Source of the DNA: Anthoceros angustus
Lineage: Eukaryota > Plantae > Anthocerotophyta
Assembly: GCA_010909165.1 (NCBI GenBank)
Contig: MU008156.1
Coordinates: 434,001 to 498,000 of the forward strand
Length of the DNA stretch: 64,000 nucleotides
Reading direction: 5' to 3'
Shown: one piece after another, positions 19,596 through 49,691 of the stretch
How the letters are laid out: every line of letters begins with the position of its first letter
Numbering within the stretch: position 1 is the first letter of the stretch
The notes under the pieces: generated by a model
The model's input: only the letters and a program-made list of their open reading frames with translations
The model's database searches: none
Told to the model about the DNA's origin: nothing
Translations under genes and position numbers: made by a program

Positions 19596-20219
19596 ATGAC
19601 CACTTTCAAGCATATGTGGGTCGGAGCCTCCGTCCTGGCCACGCTAGTGGCATGCGTGCTGGCTCAGAATGGCCGCGCTGGTGGTAAGGGCGGGGCCCTC
19701 CTCCTTCCCGATGCCCTCACGGAGCCGCCGAGAAGCGTCTTCTTCCCCTTCTGGGTGCAGGCTTACAACCAGACCGGACAGCAGAGCCTGGTGACGACGG
19801 TGCAGCCGGTGGGACCGAACGGGTTCGGACAAATCGCCGTGTTGGAGGCGCCCGTGACCAAGTCGTCGGAACCCAACTCCACCGTGATCGCAGACGTTCG
19901 TGGTGTCCTCTTCTTCGTTAGTCAGGAGTTCCCCGGTATCGAGTTGACGGTGACGGTGACGTTCAGAAACAACATCGGCGTCCCGGCAAACAGCAGCATC
20001 AACTTCCAGGGATTTAGACCTTACCCGGAAGTCTTTCTGGAGGCGTACAACTTGTCCGCGGTGGGAGGAACTGGCGCTTTCGCCTGTGCTCAAGGAGTCC
20101 TGACCCAGTCTGTCTCCTTCGCCAACCAAACTCTCATCACCCTTCGTAGCATCGCCTACATCGTCGTCGGCTGTGGCTTCAACCCCACCAACGCCTTCTA
20201 CCTCTTCTCCTCCTCATAG
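19596..20219 (+). CDS. DIR: Dirigent-like secreted protein (DIR-1), intronless, 207 aa
   Basis: Signal peptide; FGQIAVLEAPVT..SEPNSTVIADVRG, INFQG, NLSAVGGTGAFACAQG are dirigent-fold motifs; N-glycosylation sequons present. Confidence 0.8.
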   Translation: MTTFKHMWVGASVLATLVACVLAQNGRAGGKGGALLLPDALTEPPRSVFFPFWVQAYNQTGQQSLVTTVQPVGPNGFGQIAVLEAPVTKSSEPNSTVIADVRGVLFFVSQEFPGIELTVTVTFRNNIGVPANSSINFQGFRPYPEVFLEAYNLSAVGGTGAFACAQGVLTQSVSFANQTLITLRSIAYIVVGCGFNPTNAFYLFSSS

Positions 20220-21317
20220 CCATAGGCAGCGCATACAACATGCTTTTGCCTTTCATATGATATCTTGTGCCTAATGTGCCAGGCCAACCCTCGTACCGAT
20301 GTTGTGAAGTACAAGTCCTTTCCAATGTGAAGTATGATAGATTTCTTTCATGGTAGATTATACAATATTTAATAATAGTATTCATGAAGCATATCATAAT
20401 ACTTTTCCAAATTTAAATTACATATAAAATAATATAATGTTTTGAAAGATATTATACAAAAACCTAATTTTGAAAGCATCCGGTTTTTATGTGTGAATTG
20501 AGGTCGTGGATGGGAATTCCCAGTGTATGGTCCGTACGGAATTGGGCCACCCCTTCCCTATTCCCCATGGGTGTGCCTGTCGTATGTTTCATTCCATAGT
20601 GGATTTGATCCCATCTTTCATCTTCCGGCCCTTCCCATGCGCCATATGCCTGGTGTTTTTGAAGTGCGAAATTCTCTTGTTAACTGGTCGGATGTGCACA
20701 AGGTCTATCTCAGATTATTCCAACGTCTCTATCCTTGATGCAACTTCACACCTTCTTACCCTAACAATGGTACCCAACAAAGGAAAGCAAAGAAGCCGTG
20801 TTCCAGGAAGATGGCTGGGAGACCTGGCCTCCCCTTCCCTCCCCTCCCCCTCACCTCCGAGTTCCCGAACACTGCCCAACTACGCCACACAACTCTCTAG
20901 CATATGCCCAGTGATTGGATCTTCGCACCTTTCGTATTCCCGCCCTTTACATGCTCCATGATGCCCATTGATTGGATCTTCGCACCATATGCCCGCTCTT
21001 TACATGCGCCATGATGCCCCGTGATTCTATCTTGGCACCTCCATCTATGTACGGAAGGAGGGACTGGAAGGTGTGGAGATGGAAACATTTTGAAGAATCT
21101 TTGCAGTGAGGAAACCTTGGCAGTAATTACTGGCCATGTTAGCGGCGTGTTTGGGCATCACCGTCGTACTAACTGTTCTTGGATCGCATTAGGCGTACAA
21201 GAGAAGGACTAAGCCGGTCCTTCCTCGTGCTTCCAGTTCCACCTGCCCAAGCTTCCCTTCCCAAGTTCCAACTCTCAATACTGCACCTCTAATCAAGCTC
21301 GCAGCTCAGCTCCAGGC

Positions 21318-21943
21318 ATGCCCACTTTGAAGGATCTGTGGGTGGCCGCCTCCGTCCTCGCCACACTCGGGGCACGCGTGGTGGCTCAGAATGGCGCGAG
21401 CGCTGGTACGGGCGGGCCTTCCTCCTCCCCGACGCGCTCACAGAGCCGCGACGAAGCGTGGTTGTGGAATTCTGGCCGCAGTTCTACACCCAGCCCGGAC
21501 AGGTGAGCCAGGTGCAGACGGTACGGCCGGTGGGACCGAACCAGTTCGGCCAAATCGACGCCATAGACACGCCCGTCACCAGCGCGTCGAGTCCCAACTC
21601 CACCGAGGTCGGACGCGGCAACGGTTTCCTCTTCTTCGATAGTCAGCAGTTCCCGGGTTTTGAGAACGAGGTGACGCTGACGTTCAACAACGACATCGGC
21701 TTGCCCCCCAACAGCAGCATCCACTTCGAAGGATTTGAGCCTTCCTTCACGCCCGACTACCCGGGGCCCTACAACTACACCGTGGCGGGAGGAACCGGCG
21801 CTTTCGTCTGTGCTACAGGAGCCGTAACCGAGAATTTGTTCTCCTCGAACGCCAATGTCACCACCCTTCATGACATCGCCAACATCACCGTCGGCTGCGG
21901 CTTCAACAAGAACAACGCCTTCTACCTCTTCTTCTCCTCATAG
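21318..21943 (+). CDS. DIR: Dirigent-like secreted protein (DIR-2); apparent 1-nt frameshift at ~21415
   Basis: Paralog of DIR-1. The signal peptide from ATG 21318 joins the dirigent frame only if one G is restored in a G-run (GGG CC versus GGG GCC in DIR-1). Confidence 0.75.
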
Positions 21944-23129
21944 CTTGTGTCTTCCGAATCATATCATGTACTCTAGTGCTGTTCATATATTGATTATATA
22001 AAAGGTGATGTGGATTCAAAGAGCATAAGGTGGATGTCAAGATGGACGCATGCATTTGAATGAAATCCTGAGTCACCAAGGCCATCTGCGTGGTGATATC
22101 CTTGTCCGACTCTCAAGCACGCTTGGCTGGCATCGTCTGTAACAGTAGCGGAGATACCCACACTATGCATTGCTGACAGCTTACAAACAAATTTGCGGGA
22201 TCTCCTTTCGGCCCCCACGGATTCCGCAGCAGAATGCGTTGGATGGGAGCCTGGAAGAGATGGTGAGGCATCCTGATATGGCTGCCAGGTACGTTTGGGA
22301 TCGGGATTCTGTGGTGGGCAGGGACCTCACAGCAGATGCATGGACATACTTCAAGCTACATAGGGTGACGGGGAGGTGCTTTGAGATTGAGAGCCTCCCC
22401 ATGTGCGTGTGCAAAACACATTCCATAAAACCTTAACCGTTTCACAATGCAGACCTTAAATGGTGGAGACAAGTGAGTCTTGAGTACAGACATGGGCAGC
22501 ATAGACAGTCGATCAGAGCTGAAATCTCAAGAACACTATGAGACAAATTAACCGCAAGAAACCCATGGAATTTGTCGTGCCCAACGAAAGACGCGAATAT
22601 GGGAAACCGCGAATCTGCACGGGATATGGAAGGTGTGAGGATCCAATCAGTGGCGCATGGAAAGGGCCGGAAAATGGAAGGAGGTACGGAAGAATTTGAA
22701 GGGAAACAGGCACGGACTACAACATATCAGTGCCTCTCTAGATATGAAGGTCGCTTTACCGACTGTGTGCACCTAACAGCGGGGTGTAGTGTGTAGTACC
22801 TTGTCAAAAAAAGCAGTCTGGAAAGTATCGGGACTGTTGAGAGAAACGCTCTGAATTCCCTCCGTCGTCCCACCTCAGGCTCCATGGTTTCGATGTCCTG
22901 CTGTGTCGGTGCCACCGGCCAGGCTGGCGGCCGTTGCGTTTTGGGCATCAGCATTGTGCGTCCTGTCTTTCAGTTGCATCAGGTGTACATACATGAATAC
23001 ATTCAAAGAGGAACGCAAACCACTCCTTCCTCGTGTTTCCGTTTCCACCTTCCCTTTCCAATTCCCATTTGCTGCAAATTCCGACTTCCAACTGCACCCT
23101 TCAACGGGGCTCGCAGCTCACCAGAAAGC

Positions 23130-23760
23130 ATGGCCGCGTTGAAGCATTTGTGGGTAGCAGCCTCCGTTCTGGCCACGCTAGTGGCATGCGTCCTGGCTGG
23201 TCACAATGGCGGCAATAGCGCGGGCGCGGCCGCCTTACTAACCGCCCTCCGCGGCGACGCGCTCACGGCGCAGCCGCTCAGCGTGGTCCTTCATTTCTCG
23301 CAGCAGTTTTACAGCGTGCCCGGACGGCGGAGCCAGGTGCAGACGGTGAAGCCGGTGGGATCGAACCTGTTCGCCGACATTGACACCTTCGACGCGCCCG
23401 TCACCGCCACGTCTGATCCCTTCTCCCTCGAGATCGGTCGCGCCCGCGGTAGCATCCTGTACGATAGTCAGGAGTTCCAGGGCTGGGAGAATTTGTGGAC
23501 GCTCACGTTCAACAACCATAGCGGCTTCCCCGCCAACAGCAGCATCAACTTCCAGGGATTTCAGCGCTCCACGGAGCTCTCCCCGGCCTTACAACTACTC
23601 CGTGGTGGGAGGAACTGGCGCTTTCGCCTGTGCTAAAGGAGTGGTTACCGAGTCTGTCGCCTTCTTAAATTCCACCCTCGAGACCGTTCGTGACATCGCC
23701 AACATCACCGTCGGCTGTGGCTTCCACCCGGGCAAGGCCATCCACCTCTTCGGCTTTTGA
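23130..23760 (+). CDS. DIR: Dirigent-like secreted protein (DIR-3); apparent frameshift at ~23585
   Basis: MAALKHLWVAASVLATLVACVLA signal peptide. The frame switches between INFQGFQRSTELSP and PYNYSVVGGTGAFACAKG at CCGGCCT (CCG GGG CCC in DIR-2). Confidence 0.75.
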
Positions 23761-24463: not shown

Positions 24464-25225
24464 ATGGCCACTTTAAAGCATGTGTGGGTCCGAGCCCTGG
24501 TCCTGGCCGCGTTCGTGGCATGCGTGCTCGCTGCCCATGGCAGCCCTGGGGACGTCGACGCCACGAACGAACCGGACAAGGTGAAGGGCAAGGGCAACAG
24601 CTCGCCCAAACCGAGCAAAGGCGCTCTCCCACCGCCGACACCACCGGGCAATGGCGCCGGCTCTGAGTCGAACGTCACCGCCTTCCTCAACGCCATCAAC
24701 GGTGGCGACGCGCTGGAGGCTCAGCCGACTTCCGTGTGCGTCACCTTCTTTCAGCAGTTTTTCAACGGGGCCGAGGTGCAGACGGTGCCGCCGGTGGGAC
24801 CCAACCTCTTCGGCCGGATCGACGCCTTCGAGGTGACTGCAACCAGGACGGTGGATCCCAACTCCCTCGTTATCGGAGTCGCCCGCGGGGTCCTCCTCTA
24901 CGATAGTCAGGAGTTCCCGGGCTATGAGAACAAGTGGACGCTGGTGTTCACCGACGAGAGCGGCCTCCCGGCCAACAGCAGCATCAACTTCGAGGGATTT
25001 CAGCCTGACACGGCCGTCTTCGCGCAGCCTTACAACTACTCGGTGGTGGGAGGAACCGGCGCTTTCGCCTGTGCTAGAGGAGTCGTTACCGAGTCCACAG
25101 TCTTTGTCAATGATACTCTGGAGACCGATGCGGACGTCGCCTGCATGGTCGTCGGCTGCGGCTTCGACCGGGCCAACGCCTTCTATCTCTTCTCCTCTGG
25201 GCCAACAGATAGCGCATATACATAG
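24464..25225 (+). CDS. DIR: Dirigent-like secreted protein (DIR-4) with Pro/Gly/Lys-rich N-terminal extension, 253 aa
   Basis: Intact ORF with signal peptide, KGKGNSSPKPSKGALPPPTPPG linker, FGRIDAFE...GVARG and YSVVGGTGAFACARG. Confidence 0.82.
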   Translation: MATLKHVWVRALVLAAFVACVLAAHGSPGDVDATNEPDKVKGKGNSSPKPSKGALPPPTPPGNGAGSESNVTAFLNAINGGDALEAQPTSVCVTFFQQFFNGAEVQTVPPVGPNLFGRIDAFEVTATRTVDPNSLVIGVARGVLLYDSQEFPGYENKWTLVFTDESGLPANSSINFEGFQPDTAVFAQPYNYSVVGGTGAFACARGVVTESTVFVNDTLETDADVACMVVGCGFDRANAFYLFSSGPTDSAYT

Positions 25226-25839
25226 AATGCCCGTGTCTTGCATGTCATACCATACCAGTCGTGAAATGAGAGACCATAGATTGATAATAAGATTCAGAGG
25301 GATAAGTACGTTCGTATTTCGTAACGTTATGTTTCGAACGTTCGTCCAAAACTTGCTGAGCGATGAGCTTTAATCAGCACATGCATAGGTGAACAGGCCC
25401 GCTGGTTTTTCAAATTCATACCAGGGTCAATTTCAGTGTGAGGGAGTCACCCTTACCTGAGGCCTTTCCCCTAGGAAATTCAAGAGCTGGAAACACAACA
25501 ACGTTAATGGCATCGGGAAGCACAAAATCACGCAGACCTGGATCCTTGGAGAAGAAAGCGTCTGCTCACACTTTCCAAAACGCCACTCCTTGGGGTTTTC
25601 CAAGAAGCAGGACCTATTTGCATTGCTGACAGCTTGCAGATTAAACTTTGCAGGCTGTGCTGGCGGCCCCCACGGATTCCACACCGAATGTATAGCACGG
25701 GAGGCTGGATGGAATCTGTGGTGGGCAGGAAGCTCAAAGCAGCTGCAGACATACCTGAGTTGCCCTACCTTGAAACCCACAAATGGTGAGTTGTGGGGGA
25801 GACTTTTCCATGCTGTGGCAGTTTCCCTGCAAGCGCAAC

Positions 25840-25973
25840 ATGTGGCTTGCAGGTGGACCGCATAGATGTGGCCCAATTGGCAATGCTTAGGGTGCCAACG
25901 AGGTATGTGGCTTGCAGGTGGACCACGTAGATGTGGCCCTGTTGGCAATGCTTAGGGTGCCAACGAGGTATGT
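25840..25973. repeat. 65-bp tandem duplication
   Basis: ATGTGGCTTGCAGGTGGACC...GGGTGCCAACGAGGT occurs at 25840 and 25905. Confidence 0.9.
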
Positions 25974-26281
25974 CCTTGACGACCTCGTGATCCGGATTAC
26001 CATACATGTATGAGACAACCGACTGTGCAAAACATCCTCAACCACTCGCACACAACTGCTTTGCAACAGCGTACATCTTTTGGAGCGGTACGGTACGGCA
26101 GAGGATATCGTCCTTCAACTGGGAGCCACCAGAGATGGTTCAGCGTCTGACGTCAGATTTATTCCGCCCTCTCATCCACGACTTCACTCTGACTCCCTAC
26201 GTGCTCTACTTGACAGCTTCCTTTCCCAAGCATATAAGAAAGCGAAAGTAGCATCAGTTTCTGAGTCTACCGCTTTCATCG

Positions 26282-28352
26282 ATGGCGTTCTGGATCCCAT
26301 GGCTTGCTCTCGCCATACTCGGCTTGGCCCTTGTTTGCGACTTTTGGAGAAGGAGAAGGGGGCCTCGGCTGCATTTGCCTCCAAGTCCTCCTGGCATTCC
26401 CGTACTGGGGAACCTGACCATATTCTCTGCCAGTTCCAAGGTGCCGCACCAGCATCTGGCGCTCCTTGCCAGGAGATATACTCCGCTCATGTTCCTGAAG
26501 CTGGGATCTGCCCCTTGCATCGTGGTGTCGTCGGCGGAGGTTGCCAGGATTGTTCTGAAAGATCAGGACCACATTTTTGCTTCCCGCCCACCATCTTCAG
26601 TAACTAAGATCCTGATGTACGGCACCAAAGGCATGGCATTTGCTCCATTCGGAGAGCATTGGCGGCTGGCAAGGTACGCAAGGTTGATCAAACTTTCATC
26701 AGAGTAATTGTACATCATGGTGTCTTCGCTTGTTTTGGGTTGGTTAGCAGTGCGAATTGCACGTTCGACGCAGGAAAATCACAGCAATGGAGCTTATGAC
26801 TCAGGAAAAAGTACCCCGCGTGCGAAACGCAGAAACATCAGCCTTGCTTGCCGCCTTTTACAGTCTTGCAAGTGGCAACAAAGGGGCCCCGGTCAGGACG
26901 CGCGTCTTCTTCAGCATGCTTTCGTTCAACGTGATCACACAACTATGTTTCAGCAAGCGTTTCTTTACTTTCGAAGGAGGGCCTGCATCTGCGACCAGTG
27001 CATCAGAGAAGCCTGACTCCAATGACGTGAGCTAACTACCCTTCCAGATTGCGAGAATGCGGATGGCATCGATCATTTCACATACTATATCAGTGCCTTG
27101 GATAACTCTGGGGGAGAAATCGTCTATTTATTCTTCAGGAACATCAGGCAAGGGAATCCATAGAACTGATTAGGGAGTTCTTCGAGCTTCTCCAAGTGCA
27201 GCTCATAGGGGACTACATTCCGTACCTGTCTTTCCTGGACAGGCATATCAAGAACAGGATGATCAGGATCAGCACGCGATTTGACAACTTTCTGAACGAA
27301 ATCTTGGCAGATCACAGGAAGCACCCTGAGGAAAAAAACCCCGACTTCCTCGATGTTCTGCTCAGGCTTCCAGCGGAAGATGCGTCCACGAGTATCGATG
27401 AAACATCCTGCAAATCCCTCTGCATGGTACTGCGCACTGTCTGGAACCTCCTTCACCATGCATGTCTGACATTCGTACAGACCTACGTATACACGAAAGT
27501 AGTTCTGAGCTCCATCCTTGCTTGCTTGCTTGCCAACAGGATATGCTGCTGGCCGCGACTGAGAGCACGGCCAATATTCTGGAATGGACCATTGCAGAGA
27601 TAATCCGGCATCCTGAGGTGGCATCAAAGCTTCAGGCCGAAATGGACTCTGTGGTGGGGAAGGAGCGGCTGGTGACAGATGCGGACATCCCCAAGCTGCC
27701 ATACTTCCAAGCTACGGTGAAAGAGGTATTCCGGATGCACCCTGCCGGAGCTTTCCTAATCCCCCACATGTCCACTGAGCAGACCACGGTGATGGGGTAT
27801 GACATCCCCGCCAACACCATAGTGTTTGTGAACGTCTGGGCTATCGGCCGAGACCCTGATGCATGGGACGAGCCCGAACAGTTCCGCCCCGAGAGATTCC
27901 TTGAGAGGTGATGTACTGAATCCATCTTCCCCGCCTTGAGCACTTCCGTTCAAGATTGTCTAAAATTATAGCAAGGGCTGGTACTGAGCACTGAGCTAAT
28001 GTCTGTGATTCGGAAAAGGATTTCTTGCTTACTGATCCGTTGTTGACTCATCTGGGCTGGTTGGTGAAATGCCTGCAGGCCTGATATCGATGTTAAAGGA
28101 CAACACTTCCAACTGCTGCCGTTCGGGGCCGGACGACGACGGTGCCCAGGCACTGTTGTGGGTCTCAACCAAGTGCATCATGTTGCGGCCAGACTGATTC
28201 AAGCTTTTGAATGGTCCCCTCCCCCAGGCATGAAACCTCTGGATGTGGACATTGAGGAAATATCCGGCCTCTCACTCGTCCGAGCCCATCCACTGGAAGC
28301 TGTTCCAACTCCCAGGCTTTCGGCTCACCTCTACCAGACACCGTTTCTTTAA
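26282..28352 (+). CDS. CYP: Cytochrome P450, CYP71 clan, 5 exons
   Basis: Exons 26282-26673, 26774-27026, 27139-27426, 27540-27907, 28079-28352. Membrane anchor, LPPSPPGIPVLGNL hinge, WRLARK, I-helix LAATESTA, KEVFR, PERF, and heme motif PFGAGRRRCPG. The C-helix region looks ~3 aa shorter than typical. Confidence 0.93.
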
Positions 28353-29672
28353 AACTGCAGGGCCCTCGGAGCTCTTGGCTGTTAGGTTGTTGGTATATGG
28401 TAAAAGAAACACCGTACTTCAGGTCACCAGTATTGCAGATAAATGACACTCCAATCTACACTACCCTGTTATAGAAGAAACTTTAAAATATACATACTTT
28501 AATCTGTTTATATAGCTAATCTCATATGATCCTAGACTTTATTTTTAATAGATTTATATAAAAATAATATTCATAAATTATCAGAACTATCTTATAATAG
28601 AATTTATATCTTATACTGTTAAATAATATAGGGTTAAATAACATATAAATTATATGATTAAAATATTAAAAGTATTTAAAAATGTCTTCCGATCTCCAAA
28701 CGATATGATGATCATTCTGTTCAGATGCAATGAACCAAATGAAGATCATTATTTTCAGATTCAATGAACTATATGATGATCATTATATTCATATCCAATG
28801 AATGGTTTTCTTTACATTTCTAACAAATAGGATATCGCTTCAATCTTTTAGTATGTTTTCACCATATACTAGTGCTGTCTTAACTCATCCTCTCTAATAA
28901 GAAAACAAAATCATTCCAACTTCTTCACCACACATGTTTTAGAATGTCCATTGCAAATCAACAATTATAGGCTAAATATTCTCAAGCAATCCCAAGGTTG
29001 CACAAGATACTATGTTATATATAATAACAATAAGATATTACTATCAAACAGTGGGACTAAACAGCAAGCAACAAAGTTTAAAGTTCACCCCGATGAACAC
29101 AGTTCACTTTCACTTCTGATAAGCATATTCAATTGCACTCTTATACAAGTCCTTCACATCTTGTGAGTTGAACCTCCATCTACAATAAGATCCTGCAGAA
29201 TATCCAAATTTATGAGCATATTCTCTCACAGAATTTATGAATATCTTCTCTTTCACAAATATAAAATTTATTACGTATAATATCTCTTTATTATTAAATA
29301 AATAAATAAATATTTTATCACTAACCTTGTCTAAAGAAACCAATTGATGGAGGTGGGCGCGTGTGGATCTGGGCTTTATTTTGTGGACTTGCTTAAAACG
29401 GAAAGAGAAGCGTCCACGATTCGATTACACACGTGTGGTGACGTAGAATGAGATAAATATTCGCCTGATGTTTTGGGGAAATGAAGCAAGAACTGGTTTA
29501 CCCGGGAAGTGTCCCGGGATTAGAAAGCGGCAGGCAAGGGCGGCGGGAGCTTCCGGGGCCAGCAGCGCAGGCAGTGGTCGGGAAGGATCTGGCAGCTGGG
29601 AATGGAGCCGCCAGGAGCCGGGGGGCAGAGCTGGAGCAAACGTAGTATAATTGCAGGCCCATTTCCTCGGCT

Positions 29673-29987
29673 ATGGCATTGAGTTCCCAGCTCCAGCAAC
29701 AACAGCAACAGCAACAGCAGCGCGGCTTGAGCTCGTTCCAGCAGCGCAGGTTGCAAGCCCCGAGGCCCTCCAGGCTCTCCAGGCTCCCGCCCCCGCAGCG
29801 CCACTTCGATCTGGGCGCTGCCTTGCTCACCAATCTCCTGCTCCTCCTCGGCCTGCTCTGCCTCACGCTCCTGCCCGCCGCGCTCTTCCTGACCAAAGGC
29901 AATCCTGGCCGGGACCTCGACCGCCCGACCCTCCTCCGCTTTCTTTGCCCGGCCCCGCAAGCAGGGGCAGACCATGGCTGGGACTGA
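29673..29987 (+). other. 104-aa upstream ORF (polyQ plus hydrophobic helix) overlapping the pirin-1 start codon out of frame
   Basis: ATG 29673 to TGA 29987, 14-nt overlap with the pirin ATG at 29974. The homologous frame persists before pirin-2. Confidence 0.4.
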
Positions 29988-31471
29988 GTCCAGCGTCGCC
30001 GGCTCTGGGGCCGGCGTGCCCTTCGCCAAGCCGCGCTCTGTGGCCAGGAAGCTGCGGTCTGTGGAGCAGGCGGAAGGCGTGGGCGCCACAGTCAGGCGCA
30101 GCATTGGCAGGTGAGTTGGGTGCCCGGAAGCTTTTCAGATGCCGTCATTTCTGGGTTGTGGTTGATGGGTTGTGGTGGGCTGTTCGCAGGCCTGAGGTGA
30201 AGCAGTTGGATCCGTTTCTCATGCTCGACTATGTTACCAGTAAGAAGAGGAAGGAGGAAGGGTGTCAAATTGTGAATTGGGAAGTTCAGTGTGTGGTGTG
30301 CTTGCCTGGAACTTGACACCTTGTTTCTGGCAGTTTCTCTTCCTGCGGGCTTTCCGGACCATCCGCATCGGGGTATGTATGGCTGTACGTTGTAGTTGTT
30401 TTCTGTGGTGCTGGTACTTCGAATTGGTGGCCTCCTTCTCACAGCTTCCTGGGAAATTGCAGGATTTGAGACAGTCACTTATGTGTTAGAGGTATGGAGT
30501 CTCTAGACTGCGAATGATGTTGGTGACAGTGGTAATTGCTTCCGTGGCCCAGCTGAAATGTTTACCTTTTCGAAATCGTAATCTTCGCAGGGTGCTGTTA
30601 CGCATGAAGACTTTGCAGGCCACAAGGGTACCATCAAGGCTGGTGACTTGCAGGTATGTCCATTTCATGGACTTGCCGTATGGAAGCATCTTGACGGATG
30701 AGCAGGTTGAGAAAGAAGAAAATGTTGTATTGCAGCAATTTTCATCTCAGTCCGGACACACCTGGTGTGTTGCAGTGGATGACAGCAGGAAGAGGCATCG
30801 TCCATTCCGAAATGCCCGCCACAACTGGGGTCCAGCGTGCTCTGCAGCTTTGGGTTAATTTACCTTCAAAAGACAAGATGTACGTTCTCCTTTCCCCTGT
30901 GCTGGAGCAGGCAAATATGCTTCTTCTGGTGTCTAAAATGTGATAAAAAACTGTCAAAACGGGTTGCTCCAGGATCGAGCCTGCCTACCAGGAACTGGAA
31001 TCTAAGGATGTCCGAGAAGCAGAGAAAGATGGTGTGAAGGTCAGGGTAATCGCAGGGGTGTCTCTGGGTGTGAAATCACAGGTGTACACTCGGACTCCAA
31101 CCATGTTTCTGGATTTCACTTTACAGCCTGGAGCAACGGTACATCAGCCCATTCCTGCTGGCTGGAACGCCTTCTCCTACACCCTGGAAGGGCAGACGAC
31201 GTTCGGATGTTCGTCGGATGTAACCACGGTGGATGCTCACTACACGGTACTCTTCAGCATGGGAGATGGTCTTGTCATCTCCAACCAGTCTGACAAGCCC
31301 AGTCGGTTTCTGCTGATAGCTGGACAGCCCTTGAACGAGCCTATCGTGCAGTACGGTCCATTCGTGATGAACACGCAGCAGCAGATCTTTGAGGCTATCC
31401 AAGATTTCCAGAATCACCGAAATGGCTTTGAGAGGGCACGGACATGGGTGTCGGATGCTGTCAGGGGTTGA
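29974..31471 (+). CDS. PRN: Pirin-like cupin protein (PIR-1), 7 exons
   Basis: [68 protein letters not shown]; the His/His/His/Glu metal ligands are intact. Confidence 0.93.
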
Positions 31472-31542
31472 TGTGGTTTCTCACTCTTCTGCAGCATTAT
31501 TTAGATAGACAAGGAAGGGAAGAACTTTGTGGGGTGTGTGAT

Positions 31543-31724
31543 GAGACTGGCTGAGGGTAAGATCCTTACCATGTAAAGTAATAGGTGTGTGAGACTTTCT
31601 GAGGGTAAGATCCTTGCCATGTAAAGGAGCAGGTGTGTGAGACTTTCTGAGGGTAAGATCGTTACCATGTAGAGCAGCAGGTGTGTGAGACTTTCTGAGG
31701 GGAAGTCTTTCCGTGTAAAGTAGC
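31543..31724. repeat. 48-bp tandem repeat, ~3.8 copies
   Basis: Units start at 31543, 31591, 31639 and 31687 (GAGACTTTCTGAGGGTAAGATCCTT.CCATGTAAAG.AGCAGGTGTGT). Confidence 0.92.
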
Positions 31725-32010
31725 GATTTTAACCCTAAAGGGCGAAGCCTGTTTTCTGGGTTTTGGGCTGAATTTCAATAATTTAGGCATTATCTAAACG
31801 CAAGAAAATCGGGTGACCTTGTTTTCACTCCCTCAACTACCATCATGCCCACAATTACCATCATGCAGAGTTGCATTGGCTCATCCGTTTCTTAGAAAGA
31901 CAGGATCTCATACGCACCTTCCTCAAATTTCCAAAGCGCTGTGGCACTCCATGCTCACGGTGAGACGGGAGAGCATTTCACTCGGAACAAATTGTCTGTT
32001 GGTTCTTCAC

Positions 32011-38264: not shown

Positions 38265-38267
38265 CCT

Positions 38268-38790
38268 ATGAAGATTTTGCAGGCCACAACGGTACCATCA
38301 ATGAAGCATTTTGAAAGATGAGCAGATTAAGGAGAAACTGTTGAGTGCAGCAATTTCCATCTTAGGCTGTGTTGCAGTGATTTCAGCAGTAACAGGCATG
38401 GTGGCATGGTGGCATGGTCCATTCTGAAATGCCTGCCACAAATGGGGTCCATCGTGCCCTGCACCTTTGGGTTAACATAATCACCCAAGATGTACGTTCT
38501 CCTTGCCCTGTGCTAGAGCAGGCTGTCAAAACAGGTTGTTGCAGAATCGAGCCTCCTACCTAGAACTGGAATCTAATGATATTCGAGGAGCAGAGAAAGA
38601 TTGTGTGAAAGTCAGAGTAATCGCAGGATCACCTTACAGCCTGGAGCAACGGTGCATCAGCCCATTCCTGCTGGCTGGAACGCCTTCTCCTACACCTTGG
38701 AACGGGAGACGACATTCGTCGGATGCAACCACGGTGGATGCTCAATTACACCGTACTCTTCAACATGGGAGACGGCCTTGTCATCTCCAG
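38268..38790 (+). pseudogene. 5'-truncated pirin fragment
   Basis: Degenerate matches to pirin exons 5-7 ([33 protein letters not shown]). Confidence 0.85.
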
Positions 38791-39605: not shown

Positions 39606-41787
39606 ATGATGATGGGCGGTGGTGGGCCTGGTTGTGGCTAGTCTGCTGCTGCTGCTGCTGGCCATGGCTCCTGCGGCCTGCGGTCTTCCTGTGCCCCGCC
39701 GGACCTGGAGAATTGTCACACCGATTCTACTTTCCTTCCATCCACCTGCTGCAGGAAATCGAGTGCTGCCCTGTCCTGCCCACGCGCCCCGTGAAGGATT
39801 TCTCGTGGGACAGTCTGGAGGGATGGCGGATGCGGGAGCGGCTGGCGGCGCACCAGCTGAGTCCGCAGGACACCGCCCGCCTCAATCGAGCTTACCAGCT
39901 CATGAGCAGCCTTCCGGACGACGATCCTCGGTCCCTCAAGCATCATGCCAACCTCCATTGCGCCTACTCCAACAGATGTTGTTTATGCGCAGCGCGGTTG
40001 ATTTGTTGTTGAATGGGAATACTGTTCCTTATTGTTGATGTCTCTGTAACACATGGACAGATTCACTGGTCATGGCTGTTGATGCCCTGGCATTGATGGT
40101 TCCTGTTCTTCCACGAAAGGATTTTGGCGACGCTGCTAGGCGACCGCACCTTTGCTCTTCCCTTTGGAATTGGGACAACCAGGATCTCACGCTAAGGCTG
40201 GGTGAGGACGGCGAGCTGGAGTATCTGCCTGGCATGATCCTAAAGCTTACGTGAAACAACCGTTTCTGAGCAACTGTAGAATAACTGTGAAGAGGCTGCC
40301 TCCCAGCCTAGTAGACCTCCAGTTTAACGAGTTCGCACACCCGGAGCAGGTTACCAAGCCTCTCAACCTTCCGCCTGACGCCTTCGCCTCCAACTCAACA
40401 TCATGCATCAGGCAAGAGATGCGCCGTTTTGAAAGAGTGGATGAATTCATTTGGTTATCTGGTGATGTGAGTGGACACGTTGTCAACCTTGGACATGAGA
40501 AGGATGTCGGCAGTCTTGAACCTGGCATGCCCATTGTCCAGGTGATGGTGAGTGGAAGCGGAACAGCAAGTTTGTTCTTGGGCGAACCATACTTTTATGG
40601 GGATCCCGTGGAGCCATTTCCTCAATTTACATCCCTATTTGGGACCCTGGAAACTGGCCTCACTCCGACGTTCACGTCTCCACAGGCAATGAGTCCAGGC
40701 CCGACTATGCCGAGATGGGCAACATCGGCATGTCTGCTTCGGATCCTATTTTCTGCATTCACCATGCCAACATTGACCGCCTTTGGGAGGTATTCAGCTC
40801 AAGTTTCAGTCTTTCGACTGTGTGTTCATGAATGCAGCCATTCTCTCGTCCATCCATCCCTTCCTTCATTCTTTTTCCCCTCCATGTTGAGGAATGTTGA
40901 CTGGTGCATCTATGTAGTACACTCTGTTTGCAGCTTGAATCTCCCTTGCAATGCTGGTGAAGGTGTGGAAAAGCATCCCGGAAGGATGGAGAACCGACTT
41001 CACGGACCCTGACTTTCTCGACACAGAGTTCGACTGCTACGATGAGAATGCTGATTTGGCAAGCTGGTTACAATCTGCATTCCCTGCAAATTCCTCAGTC
41101 AGGCTAGGTCAAATTGTAACAGCAACAGTGTGAAACAAAGAGAAAGAAATGGGGACGACTGCTTGGATTCACTACTGAGTCACATCTGCAGGTGAGGGTG
41201 CGTGTGGAAGACTCACTGGATCTTCTCAAGATGCGCACCAGCTACCAGGCGATGGACGACGGTGACGATCAGTGGATCAGGTACAACGCGACCGTATGCT
41301 CCACCCTGTCCCCTCAAGAGCACACAGGATGTGGTGGTGGCGGTGGACGGAGAGCCCACCGAGCTGGCTGTGCCCAGACCGGCCCCAGGCCAGGGGAGTG
41401 GGAGGAGGTGCTGGTCCTGGACGGCATGCGGGCTGATGTTTTATCACCCACCTTGTACCCAGAGATTCTTGCCTTCACAACCAGGTTGCTGCTGTGATTT
41501 CTAGGTGTCTGTAGCAGGATTTGTGAATCGCGATCAAGAACGCTGTTCCTGTTGGATGGAGACTCTCGTGATGGCGAGGAGCCGATCCTGGGTATGTTGG
41601 GGGCCTGGAAGGAACGAGACTCCCACGGTGTGGAAAGCCGACACGCCCAACTGCTGCAGTTTGAAGCCTATGCCTAAGCTGAGGGAGAAGTTGCGGTCGG
41701 GGCCGGGGCGGTGGTCAGGAGTCCTGCAAGCTCTGCGCAGGTGACCGAAGTGTTGTTTGTAACGTTGGGAAGCATGAGGAACACTCC
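39606..41787 (+). pseudogene. PPO pseudogene B, near-identical tandem copy of A (~3.53 kb offset)
   Basis: Shares the deletion, the TGA stop and the inversion (41435-41787) with copy A; differs mostly by 1-nt indels. Confidence 0.88.
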
Positions 41788-41789
41788 CC

Positions 41790-42320
41790 TATGAAGATTT
41801 TGCAGGCCACAACGGTACCATCAATGAAGCATTTTGAAAGATGAGCAGATTAAGGAGAAACTGTTGGAGTGCAGCAATTTCCATCTTAGGCTGTGTTGCA
41901 GTGGATTTCAGCAGTAACAGGCATGGTGGCATGGTGGCATGGTCCATTCTGAAATGCCTGCCGCAAATGGGGTCCATCGTGCCCTGCACCTTTGGGTTAA
42001 CATAATCACCCAAGATGTACGTTCTCCTTGCCCTGTGCTAGAGCAGGCTGTCAAAACGGGTTGTTGCAGAATCGAGCCTCCCTACCTAGAACTGGAATCT
42101 AATGATATTCGAGGAGCAGAGAAAGATTGTGTGAAAGTCAGAGTAATCGCAGGATCACCTTACAGCCTGGAGCAACGGTGCATCAGCCCATTCCTGCTGG
42201 CTGGAACGCCTTCTCCTACACCTTGGAACGGGAGACGACATTCGTCGGATGCAACCACGGTGGATGCTCAATTACACCGTACTCTTCAACATGGGAGACG
42301 GCCTTGTCATCTCCAGTGAA
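41790..42320 (+). pseudogene. 5'-truncated pirin fragment (copy of 38268-38790)
   Basis: MVHSEMPAANGVHRALHLWVN and [14 protein letters not shown] are readable in broken frames. Confidence 0.85.
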
Positions 42321-43148: not shown

Positions 43149-45367
43149 ATGGAGGCGGTGGTGGGCCTGGTTGTAGCTAGCCTGCTCCTGGCCATGGCTC
43201 CCACGGCCTGTGGCCTGCCTGTGCCCGCGCCGGATCTGAAGAACTGTCACACCGCTTCTGCTTATTTTCCTTCCATCCACCTGCTGCAGGAAATCGAGTG
43301 CTGCCCCGTCCTGCCCTCGCGCCCCGTGAAGAATTTCTCGTGGAACAGTCTGGAGGGATGGCCGCTGCGGGTGCGGCCGCCGGCCCACCAGCTCAGCCCG
43401 CAGGACAGCGCTCGCCTCAATCGAGCTTACCAGCTCATGAGCAGCCTCCCGGACGACGATCCTCGCTCCCTCAAGCAGCAGGCCAACCTCCATTGCGCCT
43501 ACTGCGCTGGCGCGTTTCCCAGCCCTTGGAATAGCAGCATCTCGCTTCAGGTACCCGACTCGGCTCGCCTGTAAAGAATCTCATTGCGAGTCCAACACAA
43601 GTTGTTTATGCGCCGTCAGTCTTTGTTGATGTTGGTTGTTGTTGGTGTTGAGCATTTTTACACGAGATTGATGTGTGTGTAACGCATGGACAGATTCACT
43701 GGTCATGGCTGTTGATGCCCTGGCATCGATGGTTCTTGTTCTTCCACGAAAGGATCTTGGCGACGCTGCTAGGGGACCGCACCTTTGCTCTTCCCTTCTG
43801 GAATTGGGACAACCAGGATCTCACGCTCAGGCTCGGTGCGGACGGCGAGCTGGAGTATCTGCCTGGCATGATCCCTAAAGCTTACCTGAAACAACCCTTT
43901 CTGAGCAACTGTAGGAGGACTGTGAAGAGGCTGCCTCCCAGCCTGGTAGACCTCCGGTTTAACGTGTTCAGGCACCCAGAGCAGGTTACGAAGCCTCTCA
44001 ACCTGCCTCCTGACGCCCTTCGCCGCTCCAATCTCAACATCATGCATCAGGCAAGAGATGCCTCCTTTTTGAAAGAGAGGATTCTTTTAGTTATCGTATC
44101 TTGGTGATGTCCGTCGCCACAGTGTCATCCTTATGACAAGATAGTCGACAATCTTGAACCTGACATGCCTACTGTCCAGGTGATGGTGAGTGGAAGCGGG
44201 ACAGCAAGTTTGTTCTTGGGCCAAGCATACCGGCATGGGGATCCCGTGGAGCCATTTCCTCAACCTAGATCCCGATTTGGGACCCTGGAAACTGGACCTC
44301 ACTCCAACGTTCACGTCTCCACAGGCAACGAGTCCACGCCTGACTATGCTGAGATGGGCAACATCGGCATTTCGGCTCGGGATCCTATTTTCTACACTCA
44401 CCATGGCAACATTGACCGCCTTTGGGAGGTATTCAGCTCAAGTTTCAGTCGTTCGACTGGTTGTTCATGAATACAGTCATTCTCTCGTTCATCTATCCCT
44501 TCATTCATCCATTCTGCCCTCCATGTTGAGGGGTGTTGAGATCTGGTCCATCTTTGTAGTACAATCTGTTTGCAGCTTGAATCTCCCTTGCAATGCTGGT
44601 GAAGGTGTGGAAAAGCATCCCGGGAGGATCGAGAATCGACTTCACGGACCCTGACTTTCTCGACACAGAGTTCGTCTTCTACGACGAGAATGCTGATTTG
44701 GTACGAATTTCTCAGCCAGGCTAGGTTAAATTGTGACAGCAACTTTGTGAAAGATGGAGAGAAATCGAGACGACTGCGTGGATTCACCAGTTGGTCACAC
44801 CTGCAGGTGAGGGTGCGTGTGGGAGACTCACTGGATCTTCTCAAGATGGGCATCACCTACCAGCCGATGGACGAAGGTGACAACGAGTGGATCAGTTACA
44901 ACGCAACCGCATGCTCGACCCTGCCCCCTGCAGAAGCGGAGGCTTGGGTGTCCGGGCTCTCCAAGAGCACGCAGGATGTGGTGGTGGCGGTGGACGGAGA
45001 GCTCACCGAGCTGGCCGTGCCCAGACCGGCCCCCAAGCCAGGGGAGTGGGAGGAGGTGCTGGTCCTGGACGGCATGCGGGCTAACTGGGCTCAGCCCGCA
45101 CACTTGGAGGTGTTCCTCATGCTTCCCAACGTCACAAACAACACTTCGGCCACCTGCGCAGAGCTTGCAGGACTCCTCACCACCGCCCCTTACTTCGGCC
45201 CCGACCGCAACTTCTCCCTCAGCTTAGGTATAGGCTCCAAACTGCAGGAGTTGGGCGTGTCGGATTTCCTCTCCGTGGGAGTTTCGCTCCTTCCAGGCCC
45301 CCAACATACCCAGGAACGGCCCCTCACAATCGCCAGCGTCTCCATCCAGCTGGAACAGCCTTCTTGA
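43149..45367 (+). CDS. PPO: Polyphenol oxidase PPO-C, intact, 5 exons, signal peptide
   Basis: Exons 43149-43550, 43694-44050 (GC donor), 44180-44428, 44605-44700, 44807-45367. Motifs [49 protein letters not shown]. Confidence 0.92.
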
Positions 45368-45442
45368 TCATGAGTCACAAAACCCTGCTCCACATGCCTA
45401 GAAAGCACAGCAGCAGCCTGGTTGTGAAGGCCGTGTTCTTTT

Positions 45443-46251
45443 ATGAAGATTTTGCAGATCACAACGGTACCATCAAAAGCTGGTGGCGTTGTAAGTCGAC
45501 AGCTTGAATCATTTTGAAGGATGAGCTGATTCAGAAAGGTGAACGGTTGGAATGAAGCCATCTTCACCTTAGTTTGGACACACCTGGTGTATTCCAGTGG
45601 ATGACAGCAGTAAGAGGCCTGGTCCATTCTGAAAATCCGGCATGCCTGCCGCAAATGGGGTTCATCGTGCTCTGCAGTTCAACAGACAAGATGTACGTTC
45701 TCCTTTGCCCTGTGCTAGAGCGGGCATTGAAGTATGCTTCCTCTGGCTTCTGGTGACTAGGAAGTAAACTGGTTTAGGGTTAGAGGGTGGTTTAGGGTTT
45801 AGAGTTTTGGGTGTGAAATCACAGGTGTATACGACTCGCACGCGGACTCCAACCATGTTTCTGCATTTCACCTAATAGCCTGGAGCAACGGCGCAGCAGC
45901 CCATTCCTGCTGGGCTGGCTGGAACGCCTTCTCCTACACCTTGGAAGGGCAGACGACATTCGGAAGCTCGTAGGATGTACCCACGGTGCATGCTCATTAC
46001 AGCGTACTCTTCAACATGGGAGATGGCCTTCTCATCTCCAACCGGTCGGACAAGCCGAGACGGTTTCTGCGCATAGCTGGACAACCCTTGAACGAGCCTG
46101 TTGCAGAGTTCGGTCCAGTCATGATGAACACGCAGGAGATATTAGAGGCTATCCAAGATATGTAAGATATTTGAGGCTATCCAAGATCACCAAAACCACC
46201 GAAATGGCTTGAGAGGGCACGGACATAGGTATCGGATGCAATCAGAGGTTG
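45443..46251 (+). pseudogene. Pirin pseudogene fragment containing telomere-like filler
   Basis: Degenerate pirin exons 5-7 with stop codons; TTTAGGG-like units at 45772-45808. Confidence 0.85.
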
Positions 46252-46791
46252 GTGTAGTTTGTCACTTTTCTGTCCTATTGTTAAGGTCTACAAGAAAGAA
46301 AAAAGTTGTCAGACGCGAGAGATTTTTTGAGAGGGAAAGATCCTAACTTTGCGCATAAAGCAGGACTCTATGCAAGATAGGTACAAGCCTACAAGACTGG
46401 ATGCATAACGTGGGTTGTTGGTTGTTCGGTCACTTACCAGCTGCCTTGCGCGACAATTTAGGATGTGGCCCTGGCCAAGCTCAGCAAAGGCGGCACTGCC
46501 TGCTGAGTCTGCTAGTTCATCTGTCTGGGGACGATAGTCAGAATATGTCACACGTCATCTGCGAGAGAATCAAGGGAGGATTAGCAGCTCATTCTAGCAG
46601 CGAGGAGTCGGGTCGTTGCCTTCCGAATGAGATGATGAAATGAGACAGGCGCTCGGGAAGTGGCAGAGCCAGTTGTTACGATTCCATGAACGGCCCATAC
46701 GCGACATCAGCACATGATAAATCTACGAGGAAGCACGCACCTTGAGCACTCGGAGGCATCGTCCATGAGTTGGTTGTGCGTGGGGACCGTG

Positions 46792-49691
46792 ATGGAGTCG
46801 TTGGCGGGCCTGGTTGTGGCTAGCCTGCTGCTGCTGCTGGCCATGGCTCCCGCGGGCTGTGGCTTGCCTGTGCCCGCGCCGGATCTGAGGAAGTGTCACA
46901 CCGCTTCCGCTTATTTCCCTTCCATCCACCTGCTGCAGAAAATCGAGTGCTGCCCCGTCCTGCCCACGCGCCCCGTGAAGGATTTCTCGTGGGACAGTCT
47001 GGAGGGATGGCCGACGCGGGTGCGGCCCCCGGCCCACAGGCTGAGCCCGCGGGACAGCGCTCGCCTCAATCGAGCTTACCAGCTCATGAGCAGCCTCCCG
47101 GACGACGATCCTCGCTCCCTCAAGCAGCAGGCTAACCTCCATTGCGCCTACTGCGCTGGCGCGTTTCCCACCCCTTGGAATAGCAGCATCTCGCTTCAGG
47201 TACCCGACTCGAACGAATTTCAATGCGACTCCAACACAAGTCGTTTATGCGCAGTCGTCTTCTTGTTCAATCCAGAAAATGTTCCAAGTTGTCGTTGTTG
47301 AGCATTGTTGTTGTTGTTGAGCCTTGAACTTTGCCTTGCCAAACCCAAAGCGTGTAAAAATCTACAATCTATGTTGTAGTTGTTATTGTCGCTGTTGTTG
47401 TTCAACATCGAACATTGCACAACATGGATGTTCATGGAACGCATTGACAGATTCACTGGTCATGGCTGTTGATGCCCTGGCATCGATGGTTCTTGTTCTT
47501 CCACGAAAGGATTTTGGCGTCGCTGCTAGGGGACCGCACCTTTGCTCTCCCCTTTTGGAATTGGGACAACCAGGATCCCACGCTCAGGCTGGGTGAGGAC
47601 GGCGAGCTGGAGTTTCTGCCTGGCATGATCCCTAAAGCCTACGTGAAACAACCGTTTCTGAGAAACTGTAGCAGGACTGTGAAGAGGCAGCCTCCCAGCC
47701 TAGTAGACCTCCGGTTTAACGTGTTCGTGCATCCGGAGCAGGTTACGAATCCTCTCAACCTGCCTCCTGACGCCCTTCGCCTCTCCAATCTCAACATCAT
47801 GCATCAGGCAAGAGATGCTTCCTTTTTGAAAGAGAGGATTCATTTGCTTGTCTGGTGATGTGCGTGGACAGAATTGAGAAGAATATCGGCAATCTTGAAC
47901 CTGACATGCCTACTGTCCAGGTGATGGTGAGTGGGAGCGGGACAGCGAGTTTGTTCTTGGGCCGAGCATACCGGTATGGGGATCCGGTGGAGCCATTTCC
48001 TCAGTTGACATCCCGATTTGGGACCCTGGAAATCGGCCCTCACTCCAACGTTCACGTCTCCACCGGCAACGAGTCCACGCCTGACTACGCTGAGATGGGC
48101 AACATCGGCATTTCGGCTCGGGACCCTACTTTCTACATTCACCATGGCAACATCGACCGCCTTTGGGAGGTATTCAGCTCAACTTTGAGTCATTCGATAG
48201 TTTGTTCATGAAAGCCGAGCTTCGTTCCTCCATTCCTTCATTCCTTCCTCCATGTTGACATATGGTGCAACTATTGAGTACGTTATGTTCGCCTGAATTT
48301 CCCTTGCAATGCTCGTGAAGGTGTGGAAAAGCATTCCGGGAGGATCGAGAACCGACTTCACGGACCCTGACTTTCTCGACACAGAGTTCGTCTTCTACGA
48401 TGAGAATGCTGATTTGGTAAGCTGGTTACAATCTGCATTTCACCTAATAGCCTGGAGCAACGGCGCAGCAGCCCATTCCTGCTGGGCTGGCTGGAACGCC
48501 TCCTACACCTTGAAGGGCAGACGACATTCGGAAGCTCGTAGGATGTACCCACGGTGCATGCTCATTACAGCGTACTCTTCAACATGGGAGATGGCCTTCT
48601 CATCTCCAACCGGTCGGACAAGCCGAGACGGTTTCTGCGCATAGCTGGACAACCCTTGAACGAGCCTGTTGCAGAGTTCGGTCCAGTCATGATGAACACG
48701 CAGGAGATATTAGAGGCTATCCAAGATATGTAAGATATTTGAGGCTATCCAAGATCACCAAAACCACCGAAATGGCTTGAGAGGGCACGGACATAGGTAT
48801 CGGATGCAATCAGAGGTTGGTGTAGTTTGTCACTTTTCTGTCCTATTGTTAAGGTCTACAAGAAAGAAAAAGTTGTCAGACGCGAGAGATTTTGAGAGGA
48901 AAGATCTAACTTTGCGCATAAAGCAGGACTCTATGCAAGATAGGTACAAGCCTACAAGACTGGATGCATAACGTGGGTTGTTGGTTGTTCGGTCACTTAC
49001 CAGCTGCCTTGCGCGACAATTTAGGATGTGGCCCTGGCCAAGCTCAGCAAAGGCGGCACTGCCTGCTGAGTCTGCTAGTTCATCTGTCTGGGGACGACTG
49101 CTTGGATTCACCACTGAGTCACACCTGCAGGTGAGGGTGCGTGTGGAAGACTCACTGGATCTTCTCAAAATGCGCACCAGCTACCAGGCGATGGACGACG
49201 GTGACGATCAGTGGATCAGATACAACGCGACCGTATGCTCCACCCTGTCCCCTGCAGAGGCGGAAGCTTGGGTGTCCGGGCTCTCCAAGAGCACGAGGAA
49301 TGTGGTGGTGGAGGTGGACGGAGAGCCCACCGAGCTGGCCGTGCCCAGGCCGGCCCCCAGGCCAGGGGAGTGGGAGGAGGTGCTGGTCCTGGACGGCATG
49401 CGGGCTAACTGGACTCAGCCCGCGCACTTGGAGGTGTTCCTCATGCTTCCCAACGTCACACACAACACTTCGGCCACCTGCGCAGAGCTTGCCGGCCTCC
49501 TGACCACCGCCCCTTACTTCGGCCCCGACCGAAACTTCTCCTTCAGCTTGGGCATCGGTTCAAAACTGCAGCAGCTGGGCGTGTCGGATTTCCACACCGT
49601 AGGCATCTCGCTCCTTCCAGGCCCCCAACACACCCAGGATCAGCCCTTCACCATCGCCAGCGTCTCCATCCAACAGGAACAGACTTTTTGA
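46792..49691 (+). CDS. PPO: Polyphenol oxidase PPO-D, coding exons intact, enlarged intron 4
   Basis: Exons 46792-47199, 47451-47807 (GC donor), 47921-48169, 48321-48416, 49131-49691. All Cu-ligand motifs are present; intron 4 carries a ~666-bp copy of upstream DNA. Confidence 0.88.
48432..49097 (+). repeat. Copy of 45860-46534 (pirin relic plus PPO-D upstream DNA) inside PPO-D intron 4
   Basis: Near-identical sequence; junctions carry the microhomologies TCTGCATT and TGGGGACGA. Confidence 0.9.

Follow-up and report, generated by a model that had tools for sequence, protein, structure and literature searches.

The question raised by this locus of the hornwort Anthoceros angustus is whether dirigent (DIR), cytochrome P450, pirin and polyphenol oxidase (PPO) genes, lying side by side over about 30 kb, form a biosynthetic cluster for phenol coupling, or whether they are neighbours that local duplication has multiplied. 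The stretch of DNA analysed, referred to as the window, is 64,000 nucleotides long and covers positions 434,001 to 498,000 of contig MU008156.1 (GenBank assembly GCA_010909165.1, forward strand), and the block in question lies between 19.6 and 49.7 kb of it. A sequence-only reading of the window had proposed an oxidase-dirigent-P450 module for lignan-like products. The answer that we consider rather probable is a different one: the block would be a birth-and-death neighbourhood of independently acting genes of the phenol-oxidation or defence type, situated in a compact genome and inflated by local segmental duplication. The locus falls short of a proven cluster of co-regulated pathway genes and stands as a testable candidate for the chemistry of phenol coupling.

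Duplication history of the block

Pfam searches of the long open reading frames (ORFs) recovered dirigent, P450, pirin and PPO domains within 19.6-49.7 kb, every one on the plus strand. No Pfam match was obtained for nine further ORFs of at least 100 aa within the same interval (eight of the nine on the minus strand), nor for the ORF at 33011-33931 on the minus strand, and no Rfam family was found in the window. At least three non-homologous metabolic families (DIR, P450, pirin, PPO) are thus adjacent within 30 kb, with no other Pfam-recognisable gene among the tested ORFs, and the earlier description of four families on one strand with nothing else recognisable across about 30 kb was borne out by the Pfam, Rfam and ORF tests. 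Intact genes in the block are DIR1, DIR4, the P450, pirin A, pirin B, PPO-C and PPO-D, and broken ones are DIR2, DIR3, PPO-A, PPO-B, a P450 relic and pirin relics, as listed here with the evidence in brackets:

19596-20219, plus strand: DIR1, intact (Pfam, tblastn, hydropathy)
21318-21943, plus strand: DIR2, frame-broken (Pfam)
23130-23754, plus strand: DIR3, frame-broken (tblastn)
24464-25225, plus strand: DIR4, intact (Pfam, tblastn)
26282-28352, plus strand: CYP71-clan P450, intact (Pfam, RNA, gene model)
29974-31471, plus strand: pirin A, intact (Pfam, RNA, gene model)
32011-32824, plus strand: P450 relic, frameshifted, exons 3-4 only (self-comparison, homology)
33555-35026, plus strand: pirin B, intact (Pfam, gene model)
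36083-38279, plus strand: PPO-A pseudogene (homology)
38303-38789, plus strand: pirin relic heading the PPO-B unit (self-comparison, tblastn)
39612-41802, plus strand: PPO-B pseudogene (homology)
41778-42315, plus strand: pirin relic heading the PPO-C unit (self-comparison, tblastn)
43149-45367, plus strand: PPO-C, intact (Pfam, gene model)
45443-46298, plus strand: pirin relic (C-terminal half, frameshifted) heading the PPO-D unit (self-comparison, tblastn)
46792-49691, plus strand: PPO-D, intact (Pfam, gene model)

Both pirins of the sequence-only reading are there and intact, with Pirin and Pirin_C domains. Its four dirigents and its PPO array are present as four dirigent-like genes and four PPO units, only two of each being intact, since DIR2 and DIR3 are frame-broken and PPO-A and PPO-B are wrecked pseudogenes.

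Comparison of the window with itself gave two adjacent pairs of matching segments. The stretch carrying P450 exons 3-5 (27117-28097) matches 31989-33015 with 81% identity, and the stretch carrying pirin A (29479-31490) matches 33042-35045 with 82% identity. A segment made up of the 3' end of the P450 and the pirin must have been copied once to 31989-35045, giving the P450 relic and the intact pirin B. The four tandem PPO units are 75-93% identical to one another and each is headed by pirin-homologous DNA, namely pirin B itself, 38303-38789, 41778-42315 and 45443-46298; a segment of pirin and PPO was evidently duplicated into four copies, and the PPO has decayed in two of them. The dirigents, too, must have been duplicated in tandem, with two of the four now broken. 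Because each PPO unit starts with pirin-homologous DNA, we take the ancestral order of the block to be DIR, P450, pirin, PPO. By this reconstruction the high gene counts are the product of duplication and not of repeated independent recruitment, and therefore only three independent juxtapositions of unrelated families are left to explain. The strength of selection differs between the surviving pairs, with ratios of nonsynonymous to synonymous substitution rates (dN/dS) of 0.11 for pirin A and pirin B, 0.36 for PPO-C and PPO-D, and 0.73 for DIR1 and DIR4.

This history bears directly on the possibility of a true module, in which secreted PPO-C and PPO-D would oxidise caffeate-type o-diphenols, DIR1 and DIR4 would steer the coupling of the quinones or quinone methides, and the P450 would make or tailor the substrate or the product, leading to lignans of the megacerotonic or anthocerotonic acid type, with the pirin as an optional member. 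We regard such a module as doubtful. That three or four non-homologous families adjoin one another without interruption by other genes speaks for it, and it is this very evidence that the duplication history cuts down to three juxtapositions; that only half of the DIR and PPO copies are still intact also counts against a module.

The four gene families

For the Pfam family Dirigent (PF03018) the gathering cut-off is 29.1 bits, and the scores were 58.6 bits for DIR1 (ORF 19596-20219), 50.5 for DIR2 (ORF 21338-21943) and 57.3 for DIR4 (24464-25225). The ORF of DIR3 (22884-23636) falls just under the cut-off with 28.8 bits because a frameshift truncates it. DIR1 is a single-exon gene for 207 aa with a signal-peptide-like N-terminus. 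DIR2 has lost 1 nt from a G run near 21390, so that its signal peptide and its mature domain are in different frames, and the gene is either a pseudogene or, the indel lying in a G run, the victim of an assembly error. DIR3, a pseudogene, has lost 2 nt near 23580 and its C-terminus has diverged, and DIR4 encodes 253 aa with an N-terminal extension rich in Pro, Gly, Ser and Lys. Signal peptides were judged by eye and by hydropathy throughout, and on this basis the signal peptides earlier ascribed to all PPOs and DIRs can be recognised as signal-peptide-like N-termini, except that the leader of DIR2 is out of frame.

Between DIR2 and DIR3, the stretch 22176-22340 gave a weak match resembling a P450 I-helix region (32% over 56 aa, E 4e-4). 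It hints at a possible old P450 relic, and at DIR-P450 units that were once duplicated too.

Homologue searches with DIR1 and with DIR4 returned one protein each, from the fern Adiantum nelumboides, and an exact-protein look-up of DIR1 gave no record; the window's own proteins are absent from the protein collections. Among 5.8 billion clustered proteins and 1.84 billion representatives, DIR4 has only one close relative, the Adiantum nelumboides protein MCO5593907.1, which is encoded without introns and is identical to DIR4 at 75% of positions. Its gene lies next to a long-intron DnaJ gene on a contig of 550 kb, and no PPO, P450 or pirin was seen near it on that contig. Hornwort-fern exchange, a rare retained family or a chimeric assembly could be the source of this relative; neochrome is reportedly a case of exchange between a hornwort and a fern. 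When a dirigent profile made from the window DIRs and the fern protein was run against the 1.84 billion representative proteins, 97 matches were obtained at E<=1e-3 and six at E<=1e-10. The single match below 1e-30 was the profile's own Adiantum nelumboides member, the next genuine ones were unremarkable dirigents of angiosperms and liverworts at about 1e-10 to 1e-13, and one match at E<=1e-10 was a spurious repeat in a 1795-aa animal protein. Within 10 kb of a DIR from the liverwort Calypogeia there is only another DIR.

The solved dirigents PsDRR206 (4REV), AtDIR6 (5LAL) and the pterocarpan synthases (6OOC, 6OOD) belong to the same Pfam family as the window DIRs and have an alignable beta-barrel core, including GGTG.F...RG, but the window DIRs match them only at E values of about 1e-3 and differ at a pocket residue. 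In the alignment to 5LAL and 4REV all window copies have GAF opposite the GDF of AtDIR6 and DRR206, with Ala in place of Asp. The pocket Arg (in the ARG segment) is kept in DIR4 and its fern relative only, and is replaced by Gln in DIR1, Thr in DIR2 and Lys in DIR3. Gasper et al. are said to have described in 2016 the roles of the pocket Asp and Arg in the formation of pinoresinol by AtDIR6, for which the Asp is required. Because Ala replaces the Asp of GDF, the window DIRs appear not to be of the pinoresinol-forming (DIR-a) type, which is a further point against the module. We read them as true but atypical dirigents of an isolated clade, with a ligand that is not inferable from sequence. As members of this divergent clade, DIR1 and DIR4 would be secreted beta-barrel proteins.

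Tyrosinase, PPO1_DWL and PPO1_KFDV domains were found by Pfam in the units at 43.0-45.4 kb and 46.7-49.7 kb, and also at 3.7-4.5 kb (PPO-0, see below). The models of PPO-C (554 aa, five exons) and PPO-D (556 aa, identical exon structure) contain HCAYC with the thioether Cys, the six copper-site His, the motifs IHWSW, PWHR, PHSNVH and THHGN, and the DWL and KFDV domains, and among solved structures they match the PPOs of grape, walnut and apple and aurone synthase best. Their N-termini are short, hydrophobic and signal-peptide-like; neither a plastid transit peptide nor a thylakoid twin-arginine signal was found on them by eye and hydropathy. On these features both are canonical long-form plant PPOs, and they would be secreted or vacuolar latent catechol oxidases which, with a C-terminal shielding domain, convert o-diphenols to o-quinones. 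The residue that we take to be the gate, Phe (in GNF) in seed-plant PPOs, is Ile in PPO-C (44340-44380) and PPO-D (48080-48120) and Val in PPO-0 (around 4745-4760, GNVGVSGADP), as judged by motif alignment with a grape sequence. With Ile or Val instead of Phe at this putative gate, and known here from sequence alone, the window PPOs differ from PPOs with specialised functions. These include aureusidin (aurone) synthase, the (+)-larreatricin hydroxylase of Larrea and the aurone-forming PPO of Marchantia, which are likewise type-3 copper oxidases of the long form and carry DWL and KFDV domains; aureusidin synthase is vacuolar (non-plastidial), and the Larrea enzyme acts in a lignan pathway (PMC7010833, PMC13240065). 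Aurone chemistry is excluded for the window PPOs because hornworts are without flavonoids (PMC13240065). Anthoceros has 39-41 PPOs, and the canonical long form is the minority type with 10-12 members per Anthoceros genome (PMC13240065).

Intron 2 of PPO-C (44051-44179) and of PPO-D (47808-47920) is of the GC-AG type (CAG/GCAAGA). PPO-A and PPO-B carry GC at the matching donor, and the older paralogue PPO-0 has GT-AG there. Intron 4 of PPO-D (48417-49130) contains a 675-bp insert (48432-49097) that copies 45860-46534 with 98.7% identity. The surrounding duplication is at 87-89%, so that this copy of the pirin-relic spacer is far younger, probably through a recent insertion or through gene conversion. 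We also considered that the insertion had broken PPO-D, and rejected this since the insert sits within intron 4. PPO-A has multiple frameshifts, a deleted HCAYC region and an inverted 3' part, and PPO-B, whose unit is 92.8% identical to the PPO-A unit, has the defects of PPO-A plus further ones. The inverted 3' pieces (38016-38279 in PPO-A and 41537-41802 in PPO-B) correspond to the last approximately 90 PPO codons.

The P450 gene gave Pfam domain matches at 26282-26707 and 27462-27911, and its model of 524 aa has five exons (26282-26673, 26774-27026, 27139-27426, 27540-27907 and 28079-28352) separated by GT-AG introns, two of the four introns being confirmed directly by RNA contigs. The protein has a membrane anchor, a PPSPPG hinge (compared with the canonical PPGP), EVFR as the ExxR motif, PERF and the heme loop FGAGRRRCPG. 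Its best solved-structure matches are CYP73A, CYP93C and CYP76AH, all A-type, and because of these we assign it to the A-type P450s of the CYP71 clan, in agreement with the sequence-only reading. Identification as CYP73 (C4H), the top PDB match, was rejected, as CYP93C and CYP76AH score almost equally. The I-helix (27540-27575) reads AATEST and departs from the canonical (A/G)Gx(D/E)T(T/S) by Ala for Gly and Ser for the distal Thr. In CYP73 the I-helix reads AAIETT, so that Ala alone is not unusual. A replacement of the distal Thr, by Ala, is known from CYP81Q1, where it serves the formation of a methylenedioxy bridge (PMC13591195). The P450 would be an A-type enzyme anchored in the endoplasmic reticulum and facing the cytosol, and hence in a different compartment from DIR and PPO, which again counts against the module.

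Pirin and Pirin_C domains were found by Pfam at 31034-31471 and 34283-35026. Pirin A has 306 aa and seven exons, pirin B has 299 aa and the common seven-exon structure, and the two proteins share 94% of their amino acids. Both have the metal ligands His, His, His and Glu (in HPHRG and VHSEMP), both start with MAGTESS, and hydropathy gave no hydrophobic leader or signal peptide on either. They are 55-58% identical to the pirins of all annotated land-plant groups and about equally distant from each. Three introns of pirin A were confirmed by GT-AG joints in RNA, and the transcript contig starts at about 29515. Because they have no signal peptide and are under strong constraint (see dN/dS above), the pirins look like conserved, housekeeping-like bystanders at this locus. 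As metal-cupins of the cytosol or nucleus they would have a general role that is conserved, and such a location, together with the strong constraint and an expression schedule of their own (see below), does not suit membership in a module. A 48-nt tandem repeat of four units lies at 31536-31724, directly 3' of the pirin A stop codon.

Expression, linkage and the idea of a shared pathway

Expression was assessed in one RNA sample (run X2), the same sample as that of the DNA run of the assembly, by placing read contigs on 25000-30999. Assembler word depth was 98-280 for pirin A, 2-6 for the P450 and 0 for the last 225 nt of DIR4, and as a share of sampled words the P450 gene reached 0.53 and PPO-C 0.04. 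The P450 is thus transcribed, if at low depth, and its transcripts are spliced. Joint expression of the four families is not seen in this sample, the one available, which represents a single condition, and the pirin does not behave like its neighbours. The co-expression looked for in a cluster could thus be checked in one RNA run, which was discordant: pirin A was abundant, the P450 weak, the 3' end of DIR4 silent and PPO-C barely represented. For relative D, one of three relatives with DNA contigs (B, C and D) and the one with many RNA runs, the best runs among the RNA runs listed were X10-13 and X21-23 for the P450 and X34-37 for PPO, without overlap. This is a hint, and a weak one, against the module.

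In relatives B, C and D, DNA contigs cover both the P450, with about 92-93% identity, and pirin A, and PPO-C-like sequence is present in all three. In relative D the P450 contig runs upstream through several deletions to a loose end at 25002, which is DIR4 coding sequence. The adjacency of DIR4 and the P450 is conserved in relative D and probably in relative C. Conservation of gene order, expected of a cluster, was therefore found for this pair, but only at about 93% nucleotide identity. Because genomes this similar are expected to be collinear anyway, the conserved adjacency is weak evidence for selection on linkage, and the module gains little from it.

A pirin search returned thousands of generic land-plant pirins. 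The two closest partial matches, in Logan contigs of SRR33208241 from a more distant relative, lie beside GH3 and pentatricopeptide repeat (PPR) genes. The pirin-bearing contig (L001) is gene-dense and has an intronless PPR-E gene, and contig L004 has only a distant DIR (34%). No PPO or P450 was found on L001 and L004, the genes of which may not be orthologues of those in the window.

In the literature we found no described cluster of DIR and PPO, with or without a P450, and no plantiSMASH analysis of Anthoceros, and we know of no validated DIR and PPO cluster that could serve for comparison. The 'lignan' cluster class of the plantiSMASH type is keyed on the Dirigent domain. Like a plant cluster called in this manner, the locus holds at least three non-homologous enzyme or accessory families within about 30 kb, tandem duplicates included; it differs in being a candidate only, known from gene adjacency, and in having one housekeeping-like member, the pirin. 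If a genome of 120 Mb is assumed to hold about 15 DIR loci and 15-20 PPO loci, roughly 0.1 DIR-PPO pairs within 30 kb would be expected by chance. By this estimate a single pair would not stand out among more than 1,000 windows, but two independent pairs would.

Several observations weigh against the birth-and-death neighbourhood that we prefer, and most of them are at the same time what the module has in its favour. Four non-homologous families with plausible phenolic roles and nothing between them are unlikely under random placement. Specialised clusters are often silent in standard tissue, and one RNA sample cannot exclude co-induction. Both the DIRs and the PPOs have signal-peptide-like N-termini, the link between DIR4 and the P450 is kept in relative D and probably in relative C, and the intact copies are under selection, with PPO-C and PPO-D under purifying selection (dN/dS 0.36). 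Bryophyte PPOs and DIRs also occur together in the cell wall: both are abundant in the cell-wall proteome of Marchantia, with 12 PPOs and 23 DIRs (PMC8792609). Finally, hornworts contain abundant lignans whose biosynthesis is unsolved (PMC13240065), and for these lignans and relatives of rosmarinic acid no coupling enzyme is known and DIRs are suspected (PMC13240065, PMC12774947).

What keeps us with the birth-and-death neighbourhood is the combination of evidence given above. Of the oxidase-dirigent-P450 lignan module, the family assignments held up, and the step from families to a pathway found no support in the tests made, in view of the discordant expression in X2, the linkage seen only in relatives of about 93% identity, the segmental duplication, the broken half of the DIR and PPO copies, and the pirins, which are leaderless and housekeeping-like. 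To our knowledge no dirigent system uses a PPO as oxidant. PPO and DIR are moreover large and tandem-prone families in bryophytes, and in Marchantia 66% of the PPOs and at least 35 of the 52 DIRs lie in tandem arrays (PMC7010833). The families of Marchantia polymorpha are likewise large and of fast turnover, in local arrays with pseudogenes, and many of their members are secreted to the cell wall, a role in phenolic coupling being suspected only (PMC7010833, PMC13240065). The present locus differs from these arrays in that PPO and DIR stand in one block with a P450 and pirins, the PPOs are of the minority long form and the DIR clade is isolated.

In a birth-and-death neighbourhood the genes would act independently by default, and the one functional link of note would be that of DIR with PPO in the cell wall. 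This DIR and PPO part of the module idea is a testable one. Taken to its full extent, it would mean that in hornworts a secreted PPO, and not a laccase or peroxidase, oxidises the phenol, that a lineage-specific DIR clade steers the product to caffeate-derived lignans such as megacerotonic acid, that the P450 tailors it, and that cassettes of DIR and PPO were duplicated repeatedly because the pair cooperates; we hold this extended version to be a long shot. In either case the locus provides a short list of candidates for phenol coupling in hornworts: the two dirigents that are intact, two or three PPOs that are intact and secreted, and the P450, which is transcribed. Should DIR and PPO cooperate, this would be the first dirigent working with a type-3 copper oxidase, and it would help to explain the large size of both families in bryophytes. 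If they do not, the block is a clear example of segmental duplication imitating a biosynthetic cluster, and a caution for automated cluster calling in compact bryophyte genomes.

Flanking genes and a possible stress island

The surroundings of the block bear on another possibility, that of a stress or defence island. The features outside the block are:

3612-5754, plus strand: PPO-0 (Pfam, gene model of 545 aa)
8498-11645: direct tandem duplication of about 1.6 kb, 92.5% identity (self-comparison)
13556-17347, between PPO-0 and the DIR array: leucine-rich repeat (LRR) receptor-like kinase gene with LRRNT_2, LRR repeats and kinase domain (Pfam)
50.5-51.3 kb, minus strand: chlorophyll a/b-binding gene (Lhca-type, photosystem I antenna), abutting the array (Pfam)
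58.7 kb: PI3/4-kinase fragment (Pfam)
60369-60500, minus strand: PPO scrap of 57 aa, 40% identical to PPO-C residues 343-399

In a stress island each family would serve a process of its own (PPO wound browning, DIR the reinforcement of the wall, the P450 detoxification and the pirin signalling) within a duplication-prone, stress-responsive chromatin domain and with no shared pathway. The LRR receptor-kinase gene just upstream (13.5-17.3 kb) would fit such a domain, as would the many tandem duplicates and pseudogenes, and both PPO and DIR are classical families of stress-induced genes (PMC7010833). However, with pirin A high and its neighbours silent in the one RNA sample, no common chromatin state is apparent, and it is a photosystem I antenna-type gene that abuts the array on the other side. 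It appears to us improbable that an island of this kind accounts for the block.

One ORF tested within the duplication at 8498-11645 had no Pfam match. The further PPO that had been noted at 3.6 kb was found as PPO-0. Its model is 57.5% identical to PPO-C and has four intron positions in common with the array PPOs, and an additional intron of 110 nt (5325-5434) must be spliced out for the gene to stay in frame and be intact. The PPO relic reported at 60.5 kb is also present, as the scrap at 60369-60500, and it lies on the minus strand, unlike the PPOs of the array.

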